Shown in pieces: positions 40,147-53,604 of a stretch of 64,000 bases of DNA (its first letter is position 1; every line of letters starts with the position of its first letter). Made by a program: the position numbers and the translations under genes. A model generated the notes under the pieces. The model was given only the letters and a program-made list of their open reading frames with translations, was not told the DNA's origin and searched no databases. Location: contig CDRNST010000008.1 in assembly GCA_977016875.1 (NCBI GenBank), positions 3,224,001-3,288,000 of the forward strand, in the 5' to 3' direction. The DNA comes from Pavona decussata. Its lineage: Eukaryota.

Positions 40147-42511
40147 TTATGGTATTTGCTTGTCTGAGTCTGTAAAAAGTGGGTAATAAAGAAACCATTT
40201 ATCCACATCGGGTTTTTTGTTTTCTCTGTTGAGCACTAAGAGAGGCTTTCCAGTGAGGTAAGAAACCCCGTTCTCAGTGGCTGTTGTTTTCTCTGGAATT
40301 CCATTTGCGTCAACCAATACTGGAGCTTCTGCTATGGCTACGGCCTCTGTGGCATCATCTAAACAGGGTGAAAACTAAAATAAATATACAAAATGACCAT
40401 CACTTTAGAACATACAGATTACCCGGAATTAGAGGTACACTTTAAAAGCGGCGTGCGGTGGTGTAATATTAAAGCAGTTCGCATGCTTCAAAGAGCCGCT
40501 TAGCCGTTACAAATGGAGAAATCTCAGGGCCGTGAGGGATTGAAGCAGGAAATGCTATTTTGCACAACTTAGAAAAAGTGAGTGGCAAAATACTCAATGG
40601 GCGAACATTATTTTCGATCTTTTATTATTTTCACCGATCTGAATCTCATTACATAATGAAACATAAAAAGAAATCTATAATGCCCATTCGGTTGGTAGAT
40701 GCACGACACTTTCGTAGCAATGCTATCACGAAATTTATCATCAATAAGAGGAAAGTTAAAAAAAAAATACTTCGATTTGTTAAATTTTGGTGGGTGAGTC
40801 ACTAAAGACACATTGGTAAAGGGGAAACGATAAATGGGTTCGATTCCTATCCTGGACTCAGATCTTTATTTGCAACCCCGTGTGTATGCTCCGCGGGCAA
40901 ACGCAAAGTGAACCTGAGTGTCAGTCAATTTCATCACCGTAAGCCAAAAGCGGAAATAGAGGCTCGGGATACCTGTTACTTCTTGGTCATTGCCCATGCT
41001 GCTCTCTTCCTGTGAATATCCTAGCAATGATATGTCATTAGTTCTATTTATTTGCCTTTTTGCCCAAGTACCAAATTGGTATTTCCTTTTAAATTAGGCA
41101 ATGTTTTCATGCAGCACAATTTTCCTAGGGTCATTCTCAGAGTATGTAAAAGGGTAGTTTTTCTGCACCACTATCTTCGCTCTAAAGCATTTTCCGACTA
41201 GCGCTGTCATGGATTACTTGGCCGAAGACCGATAAACGAGCCATTTTGTCCACAAAACACCCACAATCCTATACACACACATGTGCGTATGTACGAACCC
41301 ACCTAGATGGACATTCACAATCGAGATTGTTGCCCGTCGTGCATTTTTCAGGACAATTGGTGACATATCACACAGGCGCTCTTTAATATAGACGCAATTA
41401 CTGAATTACGTTTTCATACGGCGTTTTTCGGAGAGGACTTTACTGTTGTTTTTAAACACAGCACCATGATTTGGAAAGTCTTCACTGAAGTATTCAACAA
41501 AGGAACGCATAGACTCCAATTGTTACGGATGAAGGAACAAATTTGCATTTGAGAAAGACGAGGCTCGCCTTTGCCTATCGTGGCCTTTGTATGGGTGAAA
41601 ATGTTGTTTACGGATGTTTTTCTCAGAAATATCCCTTATTAGCGCCTTAGTGGGCAAAACTATTGATACACCTCTGAAGAAAAAGTAGAATCAAGCCCGA
41701 CAAATCTATATTTATGTGAATCCAGTTCTCCAAAGTCTATTTGTATTTGCAATGAAAGGTTATTTCTTGCCCGACATGTATCCCGAACGGGCGTTTGTAC
41801 CCAGTCCTCAGAACGATACGTTGCGACTAGCAAATCATCGTTAATACAATACTTGACCCAAAATCAGAAGGAAGGTGCTTGATGACAGCTAAAATATAGC
41901 ATACCTGTTGAGTTGTTTTCTCTCCAGTCCATTTTGTGCTCTTTAGTTGTTGTCTCGTTTGTGCCATTTAAAAGGCCATCTCCGATCTCCTGGCCGTTCT
42001 TAATGGCCTCTGTTTGGTTGTCCAAATCATCAAGGAGTTTGACTATGTCGTTATTACCTAAGTTTCTTGGAGGACGTTCCTGCTCATTACTTAAGGACTG
42101 CTCATATCCAGATTTGGAGTCACCATCGCTTAGGGGGACTGTATAATTCAAAAAATAATCAGGATCACTTAAACCGGCAGTTAATTAGGGCAGTAAGTGA
42201 CATTTTTTAATGGTTAATAACTATTTATAGGACTTGTCGTTTGTTTCAATTTGTACATAACACAATCAACAGTGATCATTTTACACAATCACATTCACAT
42301 ATAACAACCGAGCTCAATAATTTATATATCTGAAAAATGAAATGGCGAGAGTCGTTTCCATAATTTAACTACTGAGACCCATTCCTGTCATTCCTTGTAA
42401 CTTAAATTTGAAACGTTTTAGCTTGTACTTACCAAGATCTACAGCAGCCGTTGACACAATTACAATAAATGCTAAGAAAACCAACACTTTTTGAGTTTCA
42501 GCTGCACTCAT
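40147..42511 (-). CDS. G6: secreted acidic protein with a novel C-terminal SYLTG domain, ~174-190 aa; exons 42511-42433 (signal), 42138-41905, probable 41020-40973, 40358-40147
   Basis: MSAAETQKVLVFLAFIVIVSTAAVDL then GTAAGT. All introns are GT-AG and phase 1, and the frame stays open to TAA at 40147. The last exon DDATEAVAIAEAPVLVDANGIPEKTTATENGVSYLTGKPLLVLNRENKKPDVDKWFLYYPLFTDSDKQIP is homologous to G8 exon 2. The optional 48-nt exon encodes GYSQEESSMGNDQEVT. Confidence 0.82.
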
Positions 42512-44239
42512 GAAAGGTTCTATGTTTGCTTTACTTAGAAGCACGACTTGTTCATTCCTGTAACATGAAACACAAGCTTAGTTTATACATACCTACCTAA
42601 ACCTCATCCAAACTACTGCAAATTAAGGGACAATTTTACCACCTAACTTAATTTCTAAAAACACAGGCTGTTCTCTATTCTATAAATGGAAAACCCCATA
42701 ATCCCGACTTATGCACTTTTCCCTAATCAGTAAGTAAACATCCTTTGTAGCTGTCGATAAGGTATTTCACAGACTGAATGCCTGGAGTAATTTTCATAAT
42801 TGTGGTATTGTTTAAATAACAAATAATTTAGTTTTGTTTATAGTTACTTAATTTGTATTCCTTGTTTGTAGATCAGTACAAAAAGGAATATGAATATAAT
42901 ATAATAAAAATGCGTGGAGACGACATTAGCTATTAAGTCACACTTGTTTGCACCGACAAGACATTCCCATTCAAGCTTGGGTTTGGTTGAGAAGGTGGCA
43001 AAAAGACGAAAGCACATTTAAACTCGTGGAAATGACACCAAAATCATGACCTTTTTTTACAGCTTTTAGGAACTTGTTCTTGAGTGTTTTTGAAGCATTT
43101 GAGTTTTATATAAACACCATAGTCACCATGAGCATCAAACAAACCAAAAAAGCCAGGTCTCTTCACCACCGCTTTAAAGAGGACATTTGTAAGTAATAAA
43201 TTGGTAATAAACGCTGCGACAGGTAGAAACATGTCGTCAGTTGCTGATCAACCCCGACGCTGTGCTTCGAATCTGACTGTACCAAATTCTTATTTTAGTC
43301 CCAAAAAATAGCATTTCATATCGCCTGCTAAAGTTAAGCAATAAGCGATGAACAAAATTTGATAGAAATCTTATGGAAAATTGGAAGAAAATTTTGAACT
43401 GTTCATCAATTACCAATTGAAAAGAACGAAGCATGGGGAGTTGTTTTTAAACACGCTTTTCCTAAGAGGCCAGGCTACGTACAAATTCATTTTAAAGTTC
43501 GTACATTATAGAATGGGACTGACCTATATATTTAGATCAAACAAGTCCTCAAAGGAGAAACGCAACCGATAAAATGCACTCCAAATCACTTTCAAACATT
43601 ATTTGTAAGCCCTTCACTAATGAAAGTCTAAAATCTTAAATTCAGCTCTCGCAAATGCTATCTTGATCCGAGATCTATCGCAGCCTTAACCTAAAAACAA
43701 CAACAGGAAATAATTTGTCTTACTTGTACTTCCGGTGCCTCCCCAAAGTTGCTGGTGTTATGGTTTTAACAATTCTCTATATCGGCAGGTGACAAGCACC
43801 ACAGATGATACGGGTGAGAAGATCTCTATTAGTACCGTGTTTATGGCGGGAAAATGGACGGGTTAGTTTACAAACACAGGAAAACATCGACAGTCTTTAG
43901 ATCACAGTTTTATGATGGGATAATAAAAACAGAACGAAAGAAAAGCCTGGTTGAAAACATTATGGAGAGGTCAAGTATTCCCGAGAATGCCATCCATCAT
44001 GCATGTCCACACTCTGTTGCTCCGATAAGATACAGCACGACAGAATGTTTGTTTATATAGTGTGCAGGATAGAGTTCAGAACTCGCGCTGCCTGTGTCTA
44101 TTGAAATTCAAGGTGTTCGCTCAAAATATGAGAGAAAATAGAATCAAAACCGCATTCTATGGAATTACTGAATTTTAGCACACACAAATAGAAGAGGCAA
44201 GAAATCCTGCCAACTCTCTGGATGTAAAAAATAGTTAAG

Positions 44240-52526: not shown

Positions 52527-53604
52527 ATGGCAGAAATGATTTTAAATCTCTTGCTATTTCTCGTGATCTTGGGGCCTGGAGACGTAAACGGGCGGCCTTC
52601 ACCGAACAGAAGAAAGTACGGTAAGTTTCCTCGTGGTCAGTTACAGGAAACTTAAATTAAAATGATGTTCTCTCTGAAAAGGTTGAACCACCCGGTGAAT
52701 GTCATTTTAGACTGAAAATAAATTGAGATTAACACAAGGAAAATGTTAGGAATTTTCGTTAGTTATATCGAGCTGTAATATTTACCATGAGAAAAGTCAG
52801 TGTGAGACGCCCAAAAAGAATTGGTTAAGATCTCAACAAAACCATTTTAAGTATTGTGTTATGTCAGGCGGCATAACCTGTCATTGTTTTGGTTTCAAGT
52901 CACACCTAAGATTTCAGTCCATTTTAAAACACCAAACAAAACTGCTTATTTTACTTAAATTAATAAGCTTGACCGTTTGAGTTTCTGTTTAGAAGACTTG
53001 GGATTAATACCTTTTACATCTATTTCCATTATTAACCTTTTTTTTAAGAGTAAGATCGTTATAGATTCGAAAAGTGGTTGTTTACAAAACAAAAACACAT
53101 TTGTCCAAATGAAGATTAAAATATATTCTTAAAACATCTTAATTATAACGATATTGAACAAAAACGTTATGCCAGGTAGAATTATATTTAGGAAAACAAC
53201 ATGTTTTAAGTAGAAGGTATCTAAGAACAAGTAAATTTACATGGCTAAATGGCCATTCAAATACTAAAGAGGATTACGTCAGTCTACCACACCAAATCAG
53301 GAGATGAATGTTTTTAATCGTAAATGTAGAAACTTGACCACCAATCCCTGAATCAATTAGATTATGACCTTTTCGTCAACTTTGTTCTATTCTAGAAGTT
53401 AAAGCTCAAGGCTCATTCGGCCTCCTTACCGTGCCAATTCTGAAAGATGCCCATGGTGTACCGCATGAGACTACTGCACAGGAAGACCAAAAGTCTTACC
53501 TAACAGGTCCTGCCTACAGAATATTAAACAAAGACAACAGTTTTGACACAAAGGATCCGCTCATCTACTTTCCTTTAGTCGCAGTTGATCATCCAAGAGG
53601 GTAG
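52527..53604 (+). CDS. G8: small secreted protein (100 aa) consisting mostly of the novel SYLTG domain; exons 52527-52620 and 53396-53604; absent from ORF track
   Basis: MAEMILNLLLFLVILGPGDVNGRPSPNRRKY then GTAAGT (phase 1). Acceptor tttgttctattctAG, then EVKAQGSFGLLTVPILKDAHGVPHETTAQEDQKSYLTGPAYRILNKDNSFDTKDPLIYFPLVAVDHPRG-stop; total 303 nt. AATAAA at ~53761. Homology to G6 independently supports coding status. Confidence 0.87.

Follow-up and report, generated by a model that had tools for sequence, protein, structure and literature searches.

SYLTG-domain proteins: two single-copy, constrained paralogues of a coral genome define an undescribed hexacoral family of putatively secreted proteins

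Introduction

Lineage-restricted secreted proteins are numerous in cnidarian genomes, with few having any assigned biology, and orphan secreted families are common in anthozoans. The described systems that invite comparison with the genes discussed here are the SCRiPs (a multi-copy, expanding family of Cys-rich, lineage-restricted small secreted proteins of corals), the precursors of cnidarian peptide hormones and neuropeptides (in which a C-terminal Gly is the usual amidation signal and an N-terminal Gln the usual pyroglutamate signal), the acidic proteins of the coral skeletal organic matrix (SAARP/CARP and the uncharacterized skeletal organic matrix proteins, SOMPs) and, at the level of a local motif, the Listeria-Bacteroides repeat (PF09479, Flg_new). 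The present analysis concerns a 64,000-nucleotide (nt) stretch of the genome of the coral Pavona decussata (assembly GCA_977016875.1, contig CDRNST010000008.1, positions 3,224,001 to 3,288,000 of the forward strand; hereafter ‘the window’, from whose first letter positions are counted), in which two genes, G6 and G8, end in exons that encode the same C-terminal domain, here called SYLTG.

Like the SCRiPs, the proteins of this family are taxonomically restricted, short, signal-peptide-bearing as judged from their sequences, and devoid of homologues outside their group. Unlike them, they are Cys-free, are encoded by one gene copy per type, are far older, being shared with Actiniaria, and are strongly constrained. 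The evidence set out below shows that G6 and G8 are two single-copy, constrained paralogues of an undescribed family, so far seen only in Hexacorallia, the products of which would probably be secreted and carry an extracellular recognition module. Public annotation already lists the genes as uncharacterized; what is new, as far as the tools reach, is the family and its domain, as no domain entry, structure or paper was found.

Two paralogues sharing a terminal-exon domain

Alignment (BLASTP) of the peptides encoded by the terminal exons of G6 and G8 extends over 59 residues with 23 identities (39%, expectation value E 7e-14), and the 22 identities over 50 positions with one gap, which an earlier note had counted on shorter stretches of the two peptides, were reproduced. 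The peptides quoted there were recovered exactly in the phase-1 frame (window positions 40150-40356, minus strand, and 53398-53601, plus strand), and the limits and phases proposed for two terminal phase-1 exons of 212 nt (G6) and 209 nt (G8) on opposite strands, separated by 13 kb, hold. When the whole 602-Mb genome was searched in six frames, each peptide retrieved only itself and its partner (E 1e-6 to 1.5e-6), and a family profile of 16 sequences run over the genome detected only the G6 and G8 copies. Because of these BLASTP and genome-wide E-values, and of the detection of only two copies, the similarity is far beyond chance. The DNA identity of the two exons is approximately 43%, and synonymous sites are saturated. 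G6 and G8 are thus shown to be paralogues of a previously undescribed protein family.

The domain comprises approximately 60 residues at the C-terminus, with the consensus P..L.D..G.P..TTA.E...SYL(T/A)G....(I/L)N....D......(F/Y)P(L/I), and throughout the family it is coded by a single terminal phase-1 exon of 206-212 nt placed behind a phase-1 signal-peptide exon. The earlier remark that it is Cys-free was borne out by a composition check, which found no Cys in either complete protein. The domain had also been described as standing almost alone in G8 and behind an acidic, glycosylated spacer in G6. In G8 little besides the signal peptide does precede it, and in G6 it forms the C-terminal part of a longer protein that is acidic and sequon-bearing, but the G6 ‘spacer’ holds a second conserved motif, discussed below. 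The genes had been described as hidden from the ORF track, but they are not hidden from public annotation, which contains orthologues, labelled ‘uncharacterized’ or ‘hypothetical’, in at least 10 hexacoral genomes.

Taxonomic range, phylogeny and constraint

Family members were sought by word-indexed searches with each exon, by an exhaustive hidden Markov model (HMM) search run against 1.84 billion cluster representatives, and by a second profile search. Apart from a single bacterial motif match, these searches returned hexacoral proteins only; the HMM search gave 14 matches, all the named ones being hexacoral, and it is the source of the bacterial one. Named members of the G6 type were found in Stylophora pistillata (PFX26873.1; LOC111328402, isoforms X1 and X2), Acropora digitifera, A. 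millepora, A. muricata, A. cervicornis, Montipora foliosa, M. capricornis, Porites lobata, P. evermanni, Orbicella faveolata and Desmophyllum pertusum, and those of the G8 type in Porites, Oculina and Acropora. G8-like genes are also found in the sea anemones Actinia tenebrosa (LOC116294691), Actinostola sp. and Exaiptasia diaphana (LOC110242179). All family members bear the names ‘uncharacterized’, ‘hypothetical’ or ‘unnamed’. The G6 type is therefore seen by name only in Scleractinia and the G8 type also in anemones, and the family appears to be restricted to Hexacorallia as far as these databases show.

In a maximum-likelihood tree of the domain, the scleractinian G8 and the anemone sequences are grouped with support of 99/95, and G6 forms a separate clade; as judged from this grouping, the G8 type is orthologous to the sea-anemone genes. 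The duplication that gave rise to G6 and G8 is old, because both paralogues are found in both major scleractinian clades. In several corals the two types still lie only a few genes from each other. The three exons of the Exaiptasia gene measure 76, 105 and 206 nt and are separated by introns of phases 1 and 1, the domain being on the terminal phase-1 exon, and its intron lies within about one residue of the place that it has in G6 and G8. An unannotated, divergent, putative third SYLTG-like exon was observed approximately 0.8 kb upstream of LOC110242179 (L007:9066-9224, plus strand, in E. diaphana LJWW01000321.1). It matches the family profile with E 1.8e-5 in a small search, is preceded by a ttttag acceptor compatible with phase 1, contains ambiguous bases, and scores with the G6 exon and not with the G8 exon. 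This exon hints that tandem copies were already present in the common ancestor.

The claim that conservation of the protein over diverged DNA reflects purifying selection was supported by the ratio of nonsynonymous (dN) to synonymous (dS) substitution rates, obtained by the Nei-Gojobori method in a comparison with another coral (ERZ25067889) over approximately 205 nt per exon. For the terminal exon of G6, dN was 0.19 and dS 0.67 (dN/dS 0.29), and for that of G8 the values were 0.14 and 1.17 (dN/dS 0.12). DNA-level alignment between the two corals is possible only in exons. Across the deepest scleractinian split, identity among G8 orthologues is still 71-84%, and family members can be recognised even in anemones.

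These data also bear on the possibility that the similarity between the two exons is due to chance, or that the exons are non-coding or derived from transposons. No support for it was found. Retroelement remnants do lie between the genes, but the E-values, the presence of only two copies in the genome, the spliced G6 RNA described in the next section, the orthologues in at least 10 genomes, dN/dS values well under 1 and an intron the phase and position of which are kept from corals to anemones refute it.

Some database entries need to be read with caution. P0031 and P0032 are family members in which many Pro, Thr, Ala, Ser and His positions are replaced by Leu, Ile, Val, Phe and Tyr, the pattern expected of translated C-to-T converted (bisulfite) reads; they are artefacts, not relatives. 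P0082 (P. evermanni CAH3015832.1, 296 residues) is a G6 orthologue fused to a retroelement-like N-terminal part and named ‘Prolactin receptor’ in UniRef, and it is probably a merged gene model with a spurious name.

Gene structures and products

The coordinates of the exons of both genes, and of other features of the interval, are collected in table 1.

Table 1. Exons of G6 and G8 and other features of the interval, in window coordinates.
Feature	Positions	Strand	Details
G6 exon 1, coding part	42433-42511	-	ATG at 42511; ends in phase 1; donor GTAAGT; spliced RNA contigs X5, X6
G6 exon 2	41905-42138	-	234 nt, phase 1 to 1; acidic; helix motif (NLGNNDIVKLLDDLDNQTEAIKNGQEIGDGLL) and N-glycosylation sequons; RNA junctions 42138/42433 and 40358/41905
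G6 alternative mini-exon	40973-41019	-	47 nt; RNA contig of run X6
G6 terminal exon	40147-40358	-	212 nt, phase 1; stop 40147-40149; SYLTG domain core ~40177-40326
Assembly gap (N run)	48281-48492		intergenic; AT-rich flanks
G7 open reading frame (context, not a family member)	49847-51073	+	Gln/Asn-rich, with Asp/Tyr-rich tail
G8 exon 1	52527-52620	+	94 nt; ATG; hydrophobic core ILNLLLFLVIL; ends in phase 1 at donor g/gtaagt
G8 terminal exon	53396-53604	+	209 nt, phase 1; acceptor ..ttctag/; stop 53602-53604; SYLTG domain core ~53431-53577; protein end ..HPRG

The product of G8 is a protein of 100 residues encoded by two exons that meet at a phase-1 junction. Exon 1 is backed by the N-termini of the orthologues P0002, P0003, P0004 and P0045, and the joined reading agrees with annotated proteins of 95-100 residues from P. 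evermanni, P. lobata, Oculina patagonica and A. cervicornis, and also with intron-less open reading frames (ORFs) of 94-96 residues in Logan. The N-terminal hydrophobic cores of the G6 and G8 proteins score 3.2-3.7 in an 11-residue Kyte-Doolittle window and are followed by small residues at -1/-3. With signal peptides judged in this way, by hydropathy only, both proteins are predicted to be secreted, G8 being probably cleaved at ..VNG/RP. Mature G8 would be basic (isoelectric point, pI, 9.1) and free of sequons. G8-type precursors range from 95 to 130 residues, with a single domain in each.

A sharper version of the secretion reading, possible but doubtful, sees in the G8 type a prohormone from which a mature protein of approximately 75-95 residues, amidated at its C-terminus (..HPR-NH2 in corals, ..HSQ-NH2 in anemones), would be released for signalling through a receptor, with an N-terminal pyroglutamate formed in anemones after furin cleavage at R-x-K-R/QQ. 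A C-terminal Gly is indeed present in 8/8 scleractinian G8 sequences of alignment A2 (..HPRG), and in the Exaiptasia and Actinostola proteins (..HSQG). In both complete anemone precursors (Exaiptasia and Actinia) a short propeptide ends in R-(I/V)-(I/-)-K-R and is followed by QQ, and G8 is the more constrained of the two paralogues. Signal peptide, small size and absence of disulfides are likewise features shared with cnidarian peptide-hormone and neuropeptide precursors. However, the Actinia protein ends in ..HSEK, without Gly; the basic processing site R-x-K-R is found in the anemone precursors only, with no conserved dibasic site in the coral G8 precursors compared; and each precursor would yield a single product of 70-95 residues, where neuropeptide genes of cnidarians typically encode many copies of short peptides, and resembles no described peptide family in sequence. 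The coral ORF clusters P0010, P0011 and P0026 also continue past the Gly. In these G8-type ORFs, from corals close to Oculina, Trp replaces the stop after ..HPRG and approximately 50 poorly conserved residues follow, which represent either a real C-terminal extension of this lineage or ORF calling into the 3' untranslated region, a choice that bears on the amidation idea. The G6 type shows none of the marks of cnidarian peptide precursors.

The arrangement of the anemone precursors, with a signal peptide and a short propeptide ending in K-R, is also usual in anemone toxin precursors. Together with the small size, predicted secretion and lineage restriction of the proteins, it would suit products of gland cells or cnidocytes (mucus, antimicrobial, venom or adhesive components) rather than signalling ligands. 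This view is rather improbable, as strong purifying selection and a long-lasting, strict single copy are unlike the behaviour of fast-evolving, expanding toxin and effector families, and the absence of Cys would be unusual among cnidarian toxins.

The structure of G6 was established from RNA. A 537-nt contig of run X5, the species label of which is the same as that of the DNA, joins 40181-40358, 41905-42138 and 42433-42557 across GT..AG introns on the minus strand, confirming the acceptor at 40358 that the earlier note had placed there; the transcript reaches at least 42562. The coding sequence (79 + 234 + 212 nt) corresponds to 174 codons plus the stop, and both introns are in phase 1. The first exon contains a signal-peptide-like hydrophobic core, VLVFLAFIVIV, with a hydropathy of 3.7. 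In a second isoform the mini-exon is included together with an acceptor at 40346, 12 nt further in, and a donor shifted by 1 nt, with a net in-frame gain of 36 nt, or 12 residues. The mini-exon encodes an insert of the (G/E)YS..ES type, equivalents of which are found in Stylophora isoforms X1/X2 (P0060, P0048), in the Desmophyllum protein (P0040) and in a Logan transcript. Because the Stylophora isoforms and the Desmophyllum protein have an equivalent insert, alternative splicing of G6 is conserved.

Contigs of runs X1 and X4, which are metatranscriptomic coral libraries, were considered as expression evidence and rejected, since introns and flanks are covered as evenly as exons, at approximately 93% identity; in the region examined (39800-42800) they stem from a related coral, either as genomic DNA or as RNA that is unspliced. 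In the same contigs the G6 terminal exon differs at approximately 3% of sites, compared with 5-7% in its flanks.

G6-type proteins are approximately 175-200 residues long, and mature G6 would be acidic (pI 4.3), with five N-x-S/T sequons. The second conserved motif, of approximately 32 residues, is nearly invariant in 15 orthologues and reads LGN.DI.KLLDDLDNQTEAI..G.EIG.ELL, or, with its variant positions, LGN.DI(T/S).LL(D/E)(D/E)LDN(Q/E)TEAI..G.EIG(D/E)ELL, the glycosylation sequon N-Q/E-T being invariant. In an AlphaFold2 (AF2) model of the full-length G6 orthologue P0049, with a predicted local distance difference test score (pLDDT) of 48, this motif is the only regular element and forms a 29-residue helix. 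The linker between helix and domain is variable and is the site of the alternative splicing.

The character of G6 recalls the acidic proteins of the skeletal organic matrix, and it is conceivable, though improbable, that the acidic, glycosylated G6 type, perhaps together with G8, is part of that matrix, with the domain assembling it or binding mineral or chitin-like polymers. Like SAARP/CARP and the SOMPs, G6 is acidic, sequon-bearing, predicted to be secreted and apparently confined to Scleractinia, and the genes clustered with G6 and G8 encode secreted proteins of low complexity that are partly Asp-rich. Against this assignment, the domain is also present in anemones, which make no skeleton, in the form of the G8-type orthologues, and the divergent third Exaiptasia member resembles the G6 exon rather than the G8 exon. 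Moreover, no long Asp runs are found in G6, no member of the cluster is named as a skeletal-matrix protein, and the Stylophora G6 proteins (PFX26873.1, XP_022788561-2) are absent from the accession tables, available as text data only, of the S. pistillata skeletal proteome (PMC7115838).

Comparison with known families and folds

The novelty proposed for the domain stood up to comparison with Pfam, with PDB sequences and with known structures by Foldseek and VIA-align. The queries throughout were single exons of the window or orthologues taken from the databases. A Pfam hmmscan of the two window exons gave 0 families at E <= 10, and the neighbouring genes were likewise without a match. With the full-length orthologues P0051, P0048 and P0029 only sub-threshold noise was obtained (at most 13 bits against cut-offs of 27), and the family profile gave 0 matches at E <= 10 among PDB sequences. 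An AF2 model of the G8 domain, calculated from an alignment of 25 sequences, reached a pLDDT of 72.7 and a predicted template modelling score (pTM) of 0.47, the best-predicted part being residues 41-60. The earlier description of the domain as clearly foldable and beta-rich is weakly borne out by this model, which has two short strands in an otherwise irregular chain. With this model, at a pLDDT of 73, Foldseek found nothing better than E 1.8 in PDB (template modelling score, TM, < 0.4), a shape comparison with the ESM Atlas gave TM <= 0.45, and a wide, exhaustive VIA-align run gave 0 chains with Z >= 2.

The only non-cnidarian match of the profile is P0033, a protein with seven Flg_new repeats, each of which contains ..E..(N/S)SYLAG..L.V (E 3.8e-4). 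Taken with an hhalign probability of 52% over 18 columns between the domain and the Listeria-Bacteroides repeat, it raises the question of whether the SYLTG domain could be a very distant relative of this repeat (Flg_new, or InlB B-repeat), a small beta-rich binding module. Both are small, extracellular (as predicted for SYLTG), Cys-free modules with a local motif E..(N/S)SYL(A/T)G..L.(V/I). However, the match spans only 16-18 residues rather than the full length of the repeat (approximately 65-70 residues), Pfam Flg_new matches no family member even at E 10, no PDB chain gives a structural match to the domain, and the summed E-value of P0033 is inflated by its seven near-identical repeats. 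Such a relationship is therefore very improbable, and the likeness is probably a convergence of motifs.

Two further candidates were discarded. The nearest neighbours according to a language model were arthropod hypothetical proteins (0.81) and catalase fragments (0.79), both within the range given by shuffled sequences, and no catalase appeared in the PDB profile search. A resemblance to potato inhibitor I/eglin (Cys-free, approximately 70 residues, ending in ..PRVG) was considered and dropped, as no Pfam match was found.

Proposed role and its significance

If G6 and G8 do belong to a secreted family with a recognition module, as we favour, the shared domain would function outside the cell as a ligand or a binding unit, and not as an enzyme or a bulk structural repeat. 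This role is inferred because the proteins are small, disulfide-free, signal-peptide-bearing, single-copy per type and strongly constrained. Since Pro, Gly, Thr and aromatic residues predominate among the conserved positions, and the predicted chain is largely irregular with short strands, the domain may offer a surface that acquires its order on binding a partner. The G8 type could then act as a soluble hormone- or cytokine-like factor freed by signal-peptide cleavage, with furin-type cleavage in addition in anemones, and the G6 type could display this module on a helical stalk that would be glycosylated and may associate with itself. A more detailed picture, in which the SYLTG domain marks a hexacoral-specific secreted signalling class with an ancestral, hormone-like and probably amidated G8 factor common to anemones and stony corals, a scleractinian G6 glycoprotein that displays the same receptor-binding module on an oligomerising acidic helix, one receptor or matrix partner for both and a fold without solved relative, is unlikely to be correct as a whole.

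Several considerations weigh against the recognition-module reading. Secretion, processing and binding are all deduced from the sequences, and the splicing of G8 in this species from orthologues rather than from its own RNA. The domain model is of moderate quality, and its pLDDT falls below 50 when G6 orthologues alone are used; a homodimer prediction for the G8 domain, in which the alignment was unused, scored 0.00 and is evidence neither way. The taxonomic range could be wider, the databases being poor in other anthozoan orders. Finally, searches by accession, locus tag and peptide string found no mention of any orthologue in indexed papers or supplements, including a cell atlas, a regeneration atlas and skeletal proteomes.

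The family gives cnidarian biologists something useful to test, but it comes as no surprise. It is tractable, with two single-copy genes per coral, small products, a clean domain-exon unit and extreme conservation, and orthologues exist in the laboratory models Exaiptasia, Acropora millepora and Stylophora. Should the short form be an amidated protein hormone, it would represent a new ligand class in hexacoral signalling, and should the long form be associated with the matrix, an ancestral module would be linked to calcification. Either way, the domain merits a family entry to replace the ‘uncharacterized’ label.

The locus and its neighbours

The assembly gap is situated between G6 and G7, at distances of 5.8 kb from the G6 start codon, 1.35 kb from the G7 ORF and 4 kb from the G8 start. 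As every exon of G6 and G8 is clear of the gap, the reading frames of both genes are independent of it, and the three exons of G6 are connected by RNA contigs that do not extend as far as the gap. The scaffold join matters only for the 13-kb linkage between G6 and G8. In an ungapped 43-kb contig of the ERZ25067889 coral (ctg45244) the terminal exons of G6 and G8 are 13.2 kb apart with diverging transcription, and an orthologue of G7 sits between them on the G8 strand. The linkage is thus independently confirmed by the same G6-G7-G8 order and approximately 13-kb spacing. Close gene numbers in A. cervicornis (014280/014283), P. evermanni (CAH3015829/832) and P. lobata (CAH3120971/977) also indicate it. 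G7 is 36% identical over 470 residues to the 465-residue orthologue in the same position (L005:6653-8050; tblastn E 4e-59), contains no Pfam domain, and no counterpart of it was detected beside the Exaiptasia gene.

Between G6 and the gap, at 45262-46031 on the plus strand, are the retroelement remnants mentioned above, namely a zinc-knuckle-like gag piece followed by ORF fragments that resemble protease and reverse transcriptase. Just past the gap, at approximately 48620-48680, there is an (ACAT)n microsatellite. In the ERZ25067889 coral, the part of ctg45244 downstream of the G6 orthologue (L006:13500-20225) consists of a run of intron-less ORFs, with a match to the Pox_A32 packaging ATPase, a weak match to Pox_VLTF3 and an ORF of 705 residues, and it looks like an insertion resembling giant viruses (nucleocytoplasmic large DNA viruses, NCLDV) or a co-assembled segment.

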